Below, piece after piece: positions 1-7,842 of a stretch of DNA of 64,000 nucleotides. This DNA comes from Pelomyxa schiedti (taxonomy: Eukaryota > Protista > Evosea), in assembly GCA_020536535.1 (NCBI GenBank), contig JAHLWZ010000185.1:44347-108346 (forward strand), in the 5' to 3' direction. The position numbers and the translations under genes are program-made. Within the stretch, counting starts at the first letter, position 1; each line of letters begins with the position of its first letter. Under the pieces are notes generated by a model. The model had not been told where the DNA came from. It worked only from the letters and a program-made list of their open reading frames with translations, and made no database searches.

Positions 1-3000
1 CTGCCAGTACATAGAAAAAGATGTACAGTGCCACTGATCTTCTACTATTTCGCACTGGGTAGTAGTACAGTCTTCTGAGAGAGTTGCTAGAAAGTGTCCC
101 TGTGCTTCAAATATGAAGTTGGAGTTCCCGTGGGCGGTAATTCTGGAAGGTTGGGACTCTGGAGGAGAAAGTTAGAAATAAAAAGAGGAGATAAGGTTGA
201 ATGCATACGCCCAAGTCCATAGCAGTATTGCAAAGTCCAAGATTTGTCAAAGAAAAGCAGGCAAGATTTGTCTCCAGCGCAATCACCATCATATTGTCCC
301 TTTGGAAGTGGAAAGGTTCCCTCTGGTGATGATACCAAGATAATCCTTTTAGAGTACGTGTGTAAAAATCAAGTGGGTGCATGCAATACCAGTATTCTGA
401 AAATGAAATAATGTCTTGGAAAGATTCGTCCCCTGGCCCTCCCCACGGGACTTTGATGCAGGAGCATATTAATTGTTTGTGCAAGAAGAAAGATAAGAGG
501 AGAAAACACACCAGACCATGAAACATCACAGTCACTCATATTAAGAGCCATGATGAAGGCATCTTGCGTCAAAAATGACATTGAAACCAAAAGGCCATTT
601 GGTGCATTTTCGAGTTTCAAAGGTGTATATTCTATCACTTTTTATGCACAAAGGATGTGGAGATATCCACACCTCCAGATCCAACAAGGTACATCAAACT
701 AGAGTCTTCGTCAATTTCAAGAGAATTCACCACGCCAGTGGCCTTGTCCCAAGAGAAATAACACTGCTCAGTCCCAACTGAATCGAATTTGACAAAGAAA
801 GGACCGTCACTGTTGCCACAACTATATAAATCTGGAAATGTTAGTGACAGTGAAGTGTTGTGATTACGAACTCACTGCCGTGAAGATCTTCCCTAGTTTT
901 CACCAAACTTCCATTCTTACTTGCAGATGGCTTGACAAAGGATGAAATGAAATCCATTTCTGGCAGGACCTGAGGGCAAAAATCGGAGCATTTTGCCCCT
1001 GCTTGATTCCATTGACACCCAGAATAATCCAGACAACCAGTTTCATCAAGATTATCACAGGCATCACATGACAGGGATGAAATCAAACATGAGTTCTGGG
1101 AAGTGCACCACCTGCAGCCTATCCTTGAAGGCGTCATCCTTACGTTTATGGGGAAGTTTACATACATGGTATCACATTGTCTTTGGTCTATATATGTAGA
1201 GCAAGCAGCCGGGCAGTCGATTTGAGTGGAACTGACACAAATAGAGTTGCTACAAAATTTACAGGAGGGAGTGTCTGAAATTTGGCAGTATTGTTCATTA
1301 TCTCTCACATCAGTGCAGAAGCTACAGTAGTCACTTTGTCCCACACACATTGCCGTGGCGTTGCACCATCTGCAGTCTGGCCTATTGTTGTTTTAAAAGA
1401 CACAACTCACTGACTGGATGTTCACTCACGTTAAACATGTGCCCTGGTCCTTTTGGAAACAATCCCCACAACTACCTGCAACACAAGTTTCACTGCTTGG
1501 ACAATATGAACACCCTCTAAAAGGATACCTACAGAAGAAACATCTGAGTGATGGAAGTGTGCCACTCACATACATGGAAATGCAAGACGCTTGATTGTCA
1601 CTTGCACTGCACTCTTGACAAGCCTGCTTTCCAGCTATACAGATTTCTCTAGATTCACACCATGAACACACTGAGGTTAGGTTGCAAACAGATTGATTGG
1701 CTATTTTTGAACAGTCTATTGTGAGGTTAGGTTGATGTAAAAAGGAGAGGAAGAGAGAGACCTTCAAGGAGATTGAAAAATAGGTACATTCCAGTTTCAT
1801 TTGTGTTCAAATCGAAAAGTCGCGGGAGGGATTCCCATGTTCTTGTGAGGGTTAGCATTAAATGTCAAAGACAGTATTCTATACGGAAAAGAGAGGCCAA
1901 TAGCAGCTTCACTGTGAGAAATCTTAGAGTCAAACCCGTGGAAATACCAATCTCCAGTAGAAAGCTGTTCAAGGACAGAGATTCCATTATCCCAGGGTCT
2001 AAACAAAAAGTCTTCATCCCCATCGCCATCAACATGTTCGTAGTTAAGGATAAAAAGGCAAGCGGGGAAAAATTGGTTGAGAAATAAAGGATATCACCAC
2101 AAACAAGTTGACAGGAAGTCAAGTTAACATTATACATGGAATACACATCCTTGATAATCCATTGGCCACCATCAGGGAAGCTCTCCCCAACAAATTTGGC
2201 AAGGGTAAAAGTTAGGTTTCCTGTCGTATCTCGTAGTGCTAGCATTACCATCCAGCTACCTGCTATTTGTTTGTTTTCAACTTTAAAAAGAGGAGCAATA
2301 CCTAAACATGCTGAACTACACTCGACATGAGCTGATAACGTCTGATAGATGGCAAGTTGGTTCCACCCATATCCAGTGATTGTGTCATCGTTCCACACCA
2401 CTACAACTTTTTGGTCACCCACAGCCATTAGCACCACAGGAGAAGGATGACTGGGGATATTCCCTCCAATTGTCCCGTAGAGTGGCATTTGATAAAGAAC
2501 CTCAATTCCAGAGACCGGAATTACACTTGGGCAATCAAGAGTCAGTGGATCCAGTTGGGAACCCAAAGTCCCATTGCACACATATATCCCATTTGGTGTA
2601 GTTGAGGCCGATGACGAACAGAGCAAAAATGAAGTGAAGTACTCTAGAGTTGAGTGAAAACCCACTCCAGACACACAGTTTTCCTTGGGAGATGTGTAAT
2701 CCAAATCGCCTGTGCAGGTTACATGGACTCCTCTTGGACCTACACTAAGTGCACATGGGGGAACAGTATCATTCATCGAGGCCATAACAACGATACTTGT
2801 TGTGATAAAATCTATAAAGGATGGTGAGTCCTACTTTTTTTTGTCATAAAGATTGATGAAAGAAAAATGAAGAAGAGAGAAAGGAACTAAAGATAGGCAG
2901 GCAAGTCCACACCATCCCACAATTTAGTGTAGAGCACGGTATATCCAATGAGAGTGGTTACGAGCAAATCTGTGTGCGGAACGGCACTGCAGTTGCACGC

Positions 3001-3432
3001 GTCATTGCAATTGCAGCACCCACACACCGGGTCTACCCCGGCGCACTCTCCCGCAGTTGCACCTGCCGCTATGACGCCACCGCCACCGCCATCACGCCCC
3101 ACCCGTGTCCCCAAAGGCGCCGGCTTGGTGCACGAGCACCCGGTGTGCGCCACGAAGAGGGCGTGGTGCCCCAGCGCCGTGGCGAACTGCGTGGCCGGCG
3201 CGGCCGCCGAGTACGGCGCGTCGCACGTCGGCTTGCCATAATTGAGTTTCGCTGCGAGGCGCTCGCGGTGTGCCGCGATTCCGCGCCGGGGCTCCTCGAC
3301 CGTGTACAGCGTCGAGCTCGCGGTCCGTGCAAGCAAGAACAACGTTACAACCAGCAAGAAAACGGCCAACGGTTTCACGTTGAAGCAGCAACTTCGTGTG
3401 AAGAACGTAAGTCTCGGTCTTGTACTCGCCAT
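1..3432 (-). CDS. Large Cys-rich secreted/surface protein with signal peptide, FG-GAP/VCBS-like DxDGDG motif and PSI-like Cys repeats; multi-exon, 3' end runs off the window
   Basis: The ATG at 3432 is followed by a hydrophobic segment (LAVFLLVVTLFLLA). Spliced exons give VCGDVDGDGDEDFLF and repeated modules such as CSWCESREIC, CSYCPSSETC and CRWCTSQNSC. The reading frame (…CEIVEDQWHCTSFSMYWQ) is still open at base 1. Confidence 0.7.
2036..2094 (-). other. U12-type (minor spliceosome) AT-AC intron, 59 nt
   Basis: The minus strand reads G|ATATCCTTTATTTC…TTTTTATCCTTAACTACGAAC|ATGTTGATGGC. This has the U12 5' consensus ATATCCTT, the branch consensus TCCTTAAC and an AC terminus. Removing it restores GDVDGDGDED and joins ORF 1865..2785 to ORF 1797..2006. 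Confidence 0.88.
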
Positions 3433-3679: not shown

Positions 3680-5195
3680 TCAAAGTGACCACACTCCTGG
3701 TATCTTGGTGCCACAGCGGCCACATTGTCCAGTGGGAGTCCAATCACGCATGAGGTCAACAGAGTACCCTTGCCTGTCAATAAGCGGTGCTCGGCAGGAA
3801 TGGCAGTATGTGCGCTCCCCGTCGGCTGTGGCTATGTTCCCGACGTACACGTACTGTTTGTGTGTGGTTTTGTTTGTTTTTGTTTGTATTTGTTTGTGTG
3901 TGTTAGGTTATGGTTAGAAATGGGGGGATAGAAAGCTTGCCTGAAGGTGCTTCTTTGCGGCAGCCACGGCGTTTGTGAGTGTTCGCTCTGGTGTTATCTC
4001 CACGGATTTCATTTTGTACTTGGGGAAGAACCTAGACAAGTGCAATGGAGTGTGGTTTCCCAAGGTGTTGGCAATCCACTCAGCGGCCGACTCTACTTCT
4101 TGTGGGGAGTCGTTGTGGTGTGGAATGACCAGATATGCTATTTCTATCCATACATGTGGGTGCTTTGTGCGAAGGCGTTCGAGAGTACTGCAGACAGAAG
4201 ATAGGCGGGCACCACAAATATTATGATAAAAGTCTTCAGTGAAAGCTAAGAGAATGAATGTAAAAGTCAAGTTAAAGCTATTTCAGATACCTTTTAGGTC
4301 AACATTAGCGGCATCAATATAGGGATATAGTTCGTCTAAAGGCTCTTGATTAATGTAACCTTTGGGAAGGTTTGAGTGTTAGAGCAAGGAATCAAACTTC
4401 GAACCATTGGTAACCATGACGTTTTTAAGACCTCGAGCACGTGCAAGTTTGGCAATGTCAAGAACGTACTCATAAAAAATCTTTGGCTGTTAGTATGCAT
4501 CACAAGTCAACAAGGAGTTACAGTTGGTTCGTTGTAAGTGTAGGCAATTGACTTAGAACCGCTTCTAACTGCAGCCTCAACTATAGCCTCGGGGGGAACA
4601 AAGGCCACTCCTGATGATTCAATGTCTGTAGGCTGCATTTTTTGGCAATCCCCAATGAAGTGGAGCTTTTACCTGGGAAATTGAGTAGTTTTGGCAATGT
4701 TGGCATCTTAAATTACAGCCCAAAGTTCCAAGAGAAAACGCCGAACTTCAACGTGCATAAATGTTAGAGTGCAAAAACCCAAAGCAAAGATGAGGAAATA
4801 GAGCATACGAATTTGGCAAAAAGTGAAGTAACTGCCTCAATGATTTAATACGCGGGAAGCAATAGAGGCGGAGGGCATACCGGCTTCTTTTCAATCGGAT
4901 CAGTGTGAGTAGAACAAGGTCTCCCGTAAACCAATGACACCAAACGACCTATACACAGTTAGCAATGCACAACGACATAAGTACCAAAATTTTAAAAAGG
5001 TGGGAGAGAGAGAGAGAGAAAAAAAAAGGTAACCCAACCGTTTTCGTTTTTGCGAGCACGGCAGATTCCACACTTGCCCGGCGCCACCAGACAATTATTT
5101 GGGCACAACACGCACCTCACGTTGTTGCCTCCTCCTCCCTCGCTCACTGCCTGCTGCCACGCTGCCGGTTTTTTCGCACTCACAGAAGCTGCCAT
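3680..5195 (-). CDS. amrS: AmmeMemoRadiSam-system radical SAM enzyme (AmrS-like, PFL-activase-related), about 9 exons
   Basis: Spliced motifs: VRCVLCPNNC…GKCGICRARKN, DPIEKKPLLHFLP, SLGTLGCNLRCQHCQNYSISQ (CxxxCxxC), SIAYTYNEPT, VTNGYIN, DAANVDLK, PLHLSRFFP, YVYVGN and TYCHSC…CGRCG…IPGVW*. Confidence 0.88.
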
Positions 5196-5527
5196 TACTT
5201 ACACCAAGTGAAGTTGTCTTGAGTGCCTGGCTGAGGCTTGGGTCCGCGTCGGTGCTTCGAATTCGTCAACGGTTTTTTTTTAAAAAAAAAAATAGTACCC
5301 TTCAGAGCACCTCCCCCTACGACGAGGACCTGGATTTTCCCGCGTAGGGCAGTCCTTCTGGTGTGTAGGCACTTTGGCACAAGAAGCAACACCCGCGATG
5401 GATAGTCCAGTCCCAGTCTAGAATAGAAGAAGGTGCCTTGTTTGAAAGAAGAGTGTTAGGTACATGTTTTGAGCAGAGGCGCCATGTTCCCATCTTAATT
5501 ATGGGGGATTGGATCTACTTACTGGAA

Positions 5528-7758
5528 ATGGCGGGCAGTGCCGATCAGCGGGAGGTGACGTTGCGTGTGAAGCACTTGCCTGCGTCGCTGAGCGAGGAGT
5601 CGGTCAGGGAGTTGTTTTCGCATTATGGGGCAACGTCCGTTGCTTGTCTCCACGGCTCGGCGGTGTGTCTGCCTCTATCCTTGCACACACCCACGTTCCT
5701 CTTGTGGGATATCCTCGTTGCTGTTGGAACGAGTGCTTGATTGGTTGTTCGGCGGGTGCTGTCGTTTTGAAGTGGTTTTTTTTATATTGGTTGTTCAATT
5801 ATGGGATTTAGACTGGACATGCAGTAGTCACGTTTGGGGACACTGACCAAGCCACTCAAGTCATTGAAAAATTCAACAACGCCAAGTTGCTCGACAAAAT
5901 CCTCGTCGTGGAACTCGACACGTCGACGCCAGACCCCAACACAAAACCTCGTAGTCACCATCCCAATAACAATGTTACCGCAACCGCCTCACCATCAAAT
6001 AATGGGACCCAATCTCATCTGCAGCCTCAGCCTCAGTCACAATCTCAAAAACAAAGTTCTGTGTCCACATGTGCACTGCAGCAACCTGCGAAGAATTCGA
6101 ATTCCAATGTGACTAGCGCTCCCACAATTCCTTCTTGCGTAGATACTGCACAGAGAGCCCGATCTGTTGGCGGTACACCAATTTGCTCCAACTTGGGGTG
6201 TGCAACTGCCACTTACTTGTTTTGATGTCTTTTCATTTGTTTTCCATGCCATGAACTGGTGACATTTTCTTAGTTTTTTTTTCTACTTTTTGGACTGGTC
6301 TTTCAGTATCTTTGCACTGAAAAATTTTTTAACCCTAAGGTTAATGGCAGAATAAACTATCCTGCAAATCCAACTCTTGCTTACCGATATCCACCTCCAA
6401 CTACAAACACTGTTATCAATATTGCCAGTGCAGTGAGCTAGATCTCTTTCCATTCTTTTTTTTTTTCTTCCACTATTTTAACCAGATACCAGATATGCTC
6501 CATTCCAATGCTTTACACACAAGTTCTCAACCTGATGAACAAGATGAACCTACCCCCTCCTTTTGGGGAACTTGTGACCCCACACCCCCTACTGCAGCCT
6601 GCATTACAACCAAAGTGGAAAAGTCACCCTGCTTCCTCTGCAGTCGGAGCAGGGCACAAACACTTCTCCAGTAGCTCTGAATCAGATTCTGACACCCAAG
6701 AGGATGCACCTGCACAAAGAGGTCCCAAAAGGTCTTTTCCCATTCCACCCAAAAATCTGACAATTTTTCTTATCTTTTTTAGGCTAAGAATTTCCTCTGT
6801 GAAACCAGCAGTTCCCAAAAAAGAAACAATTAAAATAGTGGAAAAACCAAGAGTACGTCAGCATAACAACCCACATAACTAACTGTGAGATAGGTAAAGA
6901 CATCTGAAAGTGGACCAAAACCAGAGACACTATTTTTAAGGCAGTCACAGATTCCTGCACACCCATCACCTTCCCCAATTTGTATCACCCTTCCACAGTC
7001 CGGTTCTATTTATTCCGCCTCTACTCAAAGTCCTATGCCTATGTCTGTAACACATATTGAACAAACAAAATCCGCCAATCTGCAATACACTCAAGCCAAA
7101 AGCGGACTTTCACAAGAGGTGGACGTTGGTCCTCTTCCTAAAGAATCTCCCCCAACCACAACTAACGTAGCATCCACTGCAACACCAATTGTCACACTTA
7201 CAACAACACCAACTACAGCAAACATACCACAGCCTGAAACAGCACTAGATTCCTCAGCTACTGCAGGAGACACTATATCTCTAGCACAAATCATTGCCGG
7301 AAAACTGACTTCTGCAGGTCAGCCCCAAGGTTGAGGGATTTGTATTAATCCTCCACAGAATTCTCGGCACAATTTCCAAACCATCAAGCTGGTGCTCCTT
7401 CATCCAAATTATATCTAAAGAATCTTCACAAGAAATCAAATCGAGCCGACCTTACCTTCGTATTTGGGCGCTATTTTCCCCCAGAAGAGAGAGTGTATGG
7501 TGTACACATCATTTCCCCGAGTCTCACGTATTTGTCTCTAAAAGGTTCCTGGATATCAATCTTCTACCAAGAGGGAAAAAATCCACAGCTTTCATCAGCT
7601 TTCCTTCTATCTCCAGTGCCTCGCAGGCTTTGACTGAGTGTCAAGGCTATAAATTACATGACACCCCGATGTTGATTGTGAGACCCCAATCCAATCAACA
7701 TTCCAATTCTCACAAAAAACAGGAATTCAGCAAGCAAGCACTCACACAACAGCCCTGA
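5528..7758 (+). CDS. RNPC3: U11/U12 snRNP 65 kDa protein (two RRMs)
   Basis: N-terminal RRM TLRVKHLPASL…LFSHYGA. Family signature YPANPTLAYRYPPP…LYTQVLNLMNKMNLPPPF. C-terminal RRM GAPSSKLYLKNL…DLTFVFGRY…AFISFPS…GYKLHDTPMLIEF. Confidence 0.9.
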
Positions 7759-7842
7759 TCTATTTTCTACCAAAAGAAAGAGTAGCATAAAGCCAAATGG
7801 CGGAAAAATAAATGCATTTTTTAGTTATTGTGTTTCATAAGC

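Follow-up and report, generated by a model that had tools for sequence, protein, structure and literature searches.

The stretch of DNA analysed here, 64,000 nucleotides of contig JAHLWZ010000185.1 of the anaerobic amoeba Pelomyxa schiedti (in the following, the window), begins within a gene on the minus strand, whose exons and introns are compiled in Table 1 together with part of an RNPC3-like gene on the plus strand. A tblastn search of a 1789-aa paralog against C185:38101-48000 yields an alignment that is collinear over paralog residues 219-1759 and that runs through repeats rich in Cys and a TM segment as well as a kinase domain in which a VAVK motif is found; from this collinearity it follows that the true gene starts at window position 3432 and ends past the window start at about C185:40580. 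The host gene encodes a large receptor-like transmembrane kinase. Its first exon looks much more GC-rich at window positions 3000-3330 (minus strand), with runs of GCG-type codons, as compared to 0.40-0.52 GC in 2-kb windows for the rest of the gene and of the window.

Table 1. Position of the predicted gene features in the window
Feature	Position	Strand	Basis
Exon 1, start codon and signal/TM-like segment	2913..3432	-	ORF; identical to the N-terminus of KAH3765866.1
GT-AG intron 1, 101 nt	2812..2912	-	Public model joins ...YTKLWD to DFITTSIVV; coordinates from sequence
GT-AG intron, 42 nt	2260..2301	-	Removed in public model
Upstream exon; at its end ...NVNLTSCQLVCG and base 1 of the split Asp codon	2095..2259	-	Homolog alignments
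Putative U12-type AT-AC intron, 59 nt, phase 1	2036..2094	-	Sequence, restored frame, homolog introns at the same position
5' splice site ATATCCTTT	2086..2094	-	Sequence; G/ATATCCTT invariant in three homologous genes
Branch-site box TCCTTAAC	2043..2050	-	Exact consensus; intron positions 45-52
3' terminal AC	2036..2037	-	Read from sequence
Downstream exon, (D)VDGDGDEDFLFRPWDNG..., FG-GAP-like DxDxDG loop	1885..2035	-	Pfam and homologs
GT-AG intron, 43 nt, 3' of the downstream exon	1842..1884	-	In public model, though in wrong frame
Further exons, Cys-rich CxxC repeats	1..1841	-	tblastn of the 1789-aa paralog, collinear
C-terminal RRM of the RNPC3-like gene, two exons	7349-7492, 7546-7755	+	Exons searched separately

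The candidate intron and the reading frame of its host gene

All of the elements named in an earlier sequence-only reading of this DNA (the 5' end, the branch box, the AC end, and the length of 59 nt) were found again at 2036..2094 on the minus strand. The segment begins with a /ATATCCTT(T) 5' site, carries a branch box near its 3' end, and terminates with AC, with no deviation from the consensus in either the 5' splice site or the branch box. The branch A corresponds to the second A of the TCCTTAAC box (intron position 51) and is situated 8 nt from the 3' end. Such a distance lies at the short end of the usual range for U12-type introns, and is normal among the candidates found in the P. schiedti genome. 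Pyrimidines account for 43 of the 59 bases of the segment, and the tail of 7 nt that follows the box (TACGAAC) is devoid of a polypyrimidine tract. Concerning the reliability of the sequence, the DNA of the entire segment is covered by contigs from four separate genomic DNA libraries and is identical among them. These contigs, from the four runs of a single study, contain the whole stretch with its introns and show no joints.

Excision of the 59 nt joins TGT GGT G to AT GTT GAT GGC GAT GGG GAT GAA GAC, which translates into CGDVDGDGDED, and the junction product (...SCQLVCG-D-VDGDGDEDFLF) continues in the frame of the ORF at 1797..2006 (minus strand). The mechanically derived ORF at 1865..2785 (minus strand), in contrast, reads through the segment into a frame without homology, such that direct translation of the sequence bears out the previous claim that the ORF enters a wrong frame and that excision restores the motif. 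This junction was translated by eye, whereas the homology searches made use of single exons separately. Up to its last residue before the putative intron, the upstream exon exhibits 42% identity to the paralog and 45% identity to an environmental homolog; the downstream exon is 54% identical to the environmental homolog from its first residue on, and the paralog is aligned in the same register. The Pfam family FG-GAP_3 matches the downstream exon from residue 1 with an E-value of 0.005, which is below the family cut-off, so that the DxDxDG loop is to be considered FG-GAP-like but formally outside the family. In the corrected frame, the exon past the 43-nt intron reads TWESLPRLFDLNTNETG..., parallel to SWLDMPQISNTVFNSTT of the paralog, and once the 59 nt are excised more than 1,300 codons stay open and collinear with the paralog.

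The public protein for the locus is KAH3765866.1 ('hypothetical protein Pelo_2269'), which comprises 479 aa. The 59 nt are translated in it as coding sequence, and the model terminates out of frame; because of this read-through and the subsequent loss of frame it is a truncation of the real gene. The expectation that annotation restricted to GT-AG introns would mis-model this gene is thereby directly confirmed. The wrong-frame tail of KAH3765866.1 had no homolog in protein searches. A transcript-derived protein spanning the junction was not found in the protein collections, where the searches yielded the two annotated NCBI models alone. Apart from this, KAH3765866.1 lacks the 14 residues IAPLFKVENKQIAG at the 42-nt GT-AG intron, and the paralog possesses no insertion at this place either.

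Introns at the same position in two homologous genes

A search with the upstream exon led to the paralog already mentioned, a protein of 1789 aa annotated as 'tyrosine protein kinase [Pelomyxa schiedti]' on contig C993. Its DNA encodes ...NLTSCQLLCT and then continues with G/ATATCCTTT, at the same phase-1 position as in the window gene; this 5' splice site is situated at contig position 19375 of C993 on the minus strand. If the intron is read as AT-AA, it is 63 nt long, ends with AA, and is followed by AC TTA GAT GAT GAC GGT GAT GAG GAT, which results in CTD-LDDDGDEDLLF and aligns without a gap to CGD-VDGDGDEDFLF of the window gene. With this AA end, the A of the CCCTTCAC box lies 11 nt from the end of the intron. 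An AG end, at 69 nt, also keeps the frame and makes the product two residues shorter, while the frame is lost with the AC at 65 nt; translation through the intron would run into an in-frame stop. The paralog intron is a predicted U12-type intron, probably with AT-AA termini and a length of 63 nt. The public model of the paralog uses a cryptic GT situated 24 nt upstream of ATATCC, by which the conserved SCQLLCTD is lost.

The environmental homolog is located on a metagenome contig of 1.19 Mb from ENA (ERZ21831265 ctg82076l) and belongs to a different organism. Here, ...SSCQLVCG is followed by G/ATATCCTTA ... ACTTAAC and 9 nt ending with AC, 48 nt in all, and the exon resumes with AT GTA GAT GAC GAC GGG GAT GAG GAC, corresponding to D-VDDDGDEDFIF. 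This AT-AC candidate occupies positions 3681-3728 of the stretch of ctg82076l examined. The contig is eukaryotic and probably derives from an uncultured relative that possesses a minor spliceosome.

Across the window gene, the paralog (in its AT-AA reading), and the environmental homolog, D[VL]D[DG]DGDED is matched without a gap. In a three-way alignment of the DNA, conservation is limited to the exons and G/ATATCCTT, whereas the bodies of the introns differ in both length and sequence. With no more than 30-50% of residues in common among these genes, the retention of the signals at one codon position would be difficult to account for if the signals were not in use. This conservation of position and signals among homologs constitutes the strongest line of evidence for the predicted intron.

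Motif census and components of the minor spliceosome

Within the window, the motif RTATCCTY occurs at 12 sites, but a branch box downstream of it exists at only one of them, namely at the putative intron; RTATCCTT is present seven times versus 2.55 expected. The remaining RTATCCTY sites were therefore rejected as U12-type introns, none of them having a branch box. One of these rejected sites, GTATCCTT at 1528, falls inside a coding CxxC repeat and is likewise without a branch box.

The genome-wide motif scan proposed in the sequence-only reading was performed with a strict pair, consisting of ATATCCTT and, 20-70 nt later, TCCTTAAC (allowed spans 36-86), with the reversed pattern serving as control. 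The strict pair was found 14 times versus once in the control, all spans being 40-54 nt, and the relaxed box YCCTTRAY 36 times versus six in the controls. The short candidates mostly show AC 6-11 nt past the box, a range that includes the 7 nt of the window intron, and are flanked by open frames. Altogether 17 AT-AC candidates with open flanking frames were obtained, with lengths of 48-63 nt and a median of 53. The previous notion of a minor spliceosome adapted to tiny introns is in agreement with these lengths, but it is not new, as such introns are known from Blastocystis (PMC10639083). The GT versions of the patterns were barely above their controls (5 versus 3 in the strict and 21 versus 15 in the relaxed form), and by the yardstick of this motif census AT-AC would be the main minor-intron subtype in P. 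schiedti. Concerning the segment at 2036..2094, chance is excluded by the uniqueness of the site in the window, the genome-wide excess of the pair, and the identity in four libraries.

Some of the hits recur within the assembly. On C380, C386, and C1502, three near-identical stretches of 76-78 nt extend from GTATCCTTTAT to TTTCCTTAAC; these could represent a U12-like intron of the GT type that belongs to a multi-copy gene or a repeat. The AT-AC candidates at C842:55874 and C862:55858 are identical and have nearly equal offsets, which suggests that the two contigs are redundant, whereas those on C521 and C1087 are similar, not identical, suggesting paralogs with a common minor intron.

Regarding the components of the minor spliceosome, the genome contains U11 (67.5 bits), U12 (58.2 bits), and U6atac (62.7 bits), all above the Rfam gathering scores, and in addition an RNPC3 (U11/U12-65K)-like gene, which lies at window positions 5400-7760 on the plus strand, 3.4 kb from the AT-AC candidate. 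The first of the two exons of its RRM listed in Table 1 has its best PDB match in human RBM40 (RNPC3, 65K; 3EGN and 5OBN, E-value 5e-5), and the second matches the U1A/U2B''/RBM40 group. With these four components, it is well founded that a minor spliceosome is encoded in this genome. The 5' end of U11 reads UAAAAGGG with an intact AAAAGGG box, which is complementary to CCUUU of the 5' splice site, and U12 keeps AUGAGUAAGGAAAA, in which the GUAAGGAA box is intact and complementary to the branch-site UCCUUAAC. A second U12-like copy at C859:7899-8035 (plus strand) scores 41 bits and misses the family cut-off; it has retained the 5' boxes but carries an internal deletion in the region of the 3' stem, and may represent a variant or a pseudogene.

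The sole U6atac candidate (C841:53279-53397, plus strand) exhibits GAGCCGAGAGA instead of GAAAGGAGAGA of the family consensus, while the introns keep ATATCCTT. The single candidate thus lacks AAGGA, the box with complementarity to the 5' splice site, and owing to the replacement the usual pairing of U6atac with the 5' splice site is not evident. A second, canonical copy of U6atac was not found in the genome, where seven sites with one mismatch had no Rfam match. The search for minor snRNAs called for by the sequence-only reading was accordingly successful for U11, U12, and U6atac but not for U4atac, which had no Rfam match in the genome at E<=0.001 or at E<=10 among the 50 of 1768 pre-filter candidates that were scored. 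A pattern derived from U6atac complementarity produced three hits, none of them U4atac according to Rfam; the best of these was rejected as U4atac since by eye it resembles coding sequence and has no Sm site. The Rfam search of the 64-kb window itself gave no matches.

Evaluation of the alternatives and comparison with known minor introns

A different way of removing the interruption would be splicing by the major spliceosome via cryptic GT-AG sites, the U12-like motifs being coincidental. Introns of 86-89 nt, for example, could extend from GT at 2097 or 2100 to AG at 2013-2012. These pairs preserve the downstream frame, and a cryptic GT of this kind, 24 nt before ATATCC, was indeed selected by the annotators of the paralog. 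However, the pairs remove GDVDGDGDE, which is conserved in both homologs, and the context of the cryptic acceptor (GGCGATGGGGATGAAG) is rich in purines and lacks a pyrimidine tract; the in-frame alternatives at 2097/2100 were rejected on account of the deleted motif and the poor acceptors. The GT-AG intron annotated in the paralog, in turn, removes SCQLLCTD, the best-conserved block of the exon, and use of cryptic GT-AG sites would not account for the invariance of G/ATATCCTT among three otherwise diverged genes. We regard this possibility as very unlikely.

Similarly improbable is that there is no intron at all, either since the gene is a frameshifted pseudogene or since the public model of 479 aa is the real product. 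The public annotation (KAH3765866.1) does treat the 59 nt as coding, but after their excision more than 1,300 codons, which include the TM segment and the kinase domain, remain open and collinear with the paralog, the wrong-frame tail of the 479-aa model is without a homolog, and the equivalent segment of the paralog has an in-frame stop if it is read through. Still more remote is an insertion of the 59 nt by an artefact of assembly or of whole-genome amplification. The genome was indeed derived from amplified single cells (PMC8887013); however, contigs of four separate libraries span the stretch without any difference at 2036-2094, and homologous introns exist at two other loci.

The claim of a U12-type AT-AC intron is, by comparison, supported by the signals, the restored frame, the position conserved in two homologs, and the genome-wide excess of the motif pair, and on these grounds we are highly confident that 2036..2094 (minus strand) is a real U12-type AT-AC intron in P. 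schiedti. Its excision, including the step that involves U6atac, can be inferred from the sequence as follows. The 5' AAAAGGG of U11 would pair with CCUUU of the 5' splice site, and GUAAGGAA of U12 would then pair with UCCUUAAC, with the branch adenosine bulged out. The 3' site would be picked by its distance, the AC being situated 8 nt downstream, with no polypyrimidine tract in between. Finally, G would be joined to AT, by which the Asp codon at the start of the DxDxDGDED loop would be rebuilt and the frame kept for roughly 1,300 further codons. That the minor spliceosome is working is likewise inferred from conservation.

Minor introns have already been reported for P. schiedti (n=90; Larue & Roy 2023, PMC10639083), in a pan-eukaryotic survey that classified annotated introns, whereas the annotation paper of this species mentions GT-AG, GC-AG, and one GT-GG intron only (PMC8887013). 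Since KAH3765866.1 reads through the segment and the survey used annotated introns, the AT-AC intron described here is very probably outside the published 90, and so, very probably, are others of the AT-AC subtype. It shares with these the species and the spliceosome, but differs from them in being unannotated.

The minor introns of Blastocystis sp. ST1 have a median length of 39 bp, and 77% of them are AT-AC (PMC10639083). They resemble those of Pelomyxa in being very short and mostly AT-AC, the census in Pelomyxa also favouring AT over GT; in contrast, Blastocystis belongs to an unrelated lineage (stramenopiles), and the candidates in Pelomyxa are somewhat longer (48-63 nt). AT-AA is the commonest non-canonical subtype of minor introns (PMC10639083), into which the paralog intron fits, whereas the window intron itself is plain AT-AC. 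Compared to the canonical AT-AC U12-type introns known from animals and plants (Hall & Padgett 1994 and Tarn & Steitz 1996, cited in PMC10639083), the intron at 2036..2094 agrees in ATATCCTTT, in TCCTTAAC near the 3' end, in the lack of a polypyrimidine tract, in the terminal AC, and in the non-zero phase. In contrast to them, it is just 59 nt in length and has its branch A at a distance of 8 nt from the 3' end, and the U6atac candidate of Pelomyxa is without the usual AAGGA box.

Entamoeba and Dictyostelium reportedly lack U12-dependent splicing, whereas Acanthamoeba and Physarum have it (PMC2846911), in agreement with the background given in the sequence-only reading. According to the survey, Physarum polycephalum has by far the highest known density of minor introns, a case of extremely rare large-scale gain (PMC10639083). 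This amoebozoan is similar to Pelomyxa in its short introns and its active minor spliceosome, but in Pelomyxa there are dozens of them, with canonical signals.

The find as such is ordinary, since minor introns were already reported in P. schiedti; even shorter ones exist in Blastocystis. If anything takes the system beyond the ordinary, it can only be the altered U6atac and the undetected U4atac. That the minor spliceosome of Pelomyxa works in an altered way, with dozens of tiny canonical and unannotated AT-AC introns as its main subtype, is a tentative idea to which we give a rather low probability. If it were true, the textbook model would not hold for the way in which the 5' site is recognised during the catalytic stage.

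The main use of the finding concerns annotation, in that two gene models are corrected and an intron subtype missing from the annotation is indicated. A single unrecognised AT-AC intron of 59 nt turns a receptor kinase of about 1,700 aa into a truncated 'hypothetical protein' of 479 aa, and at the same site of the paralog the cryptic GT-AG intron costs eight conserved residues. The motif census suggests that a few dozen AT-AC introns exist in P. schiedti, compared to zero in the published annotation; it is thus probable that the number of minor introns published for the species falls short, and further genes are likely to have models with the same kind of defect. To the minor introns already known from P. 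schiedti, the one at 2036..2094 adds a positionally conserved example. At the level of genome sequence, the finding shows that the Pelomyxa branch of the Archamoebae has retained minor splicing, the loss of which has been reported for Entamoeba.
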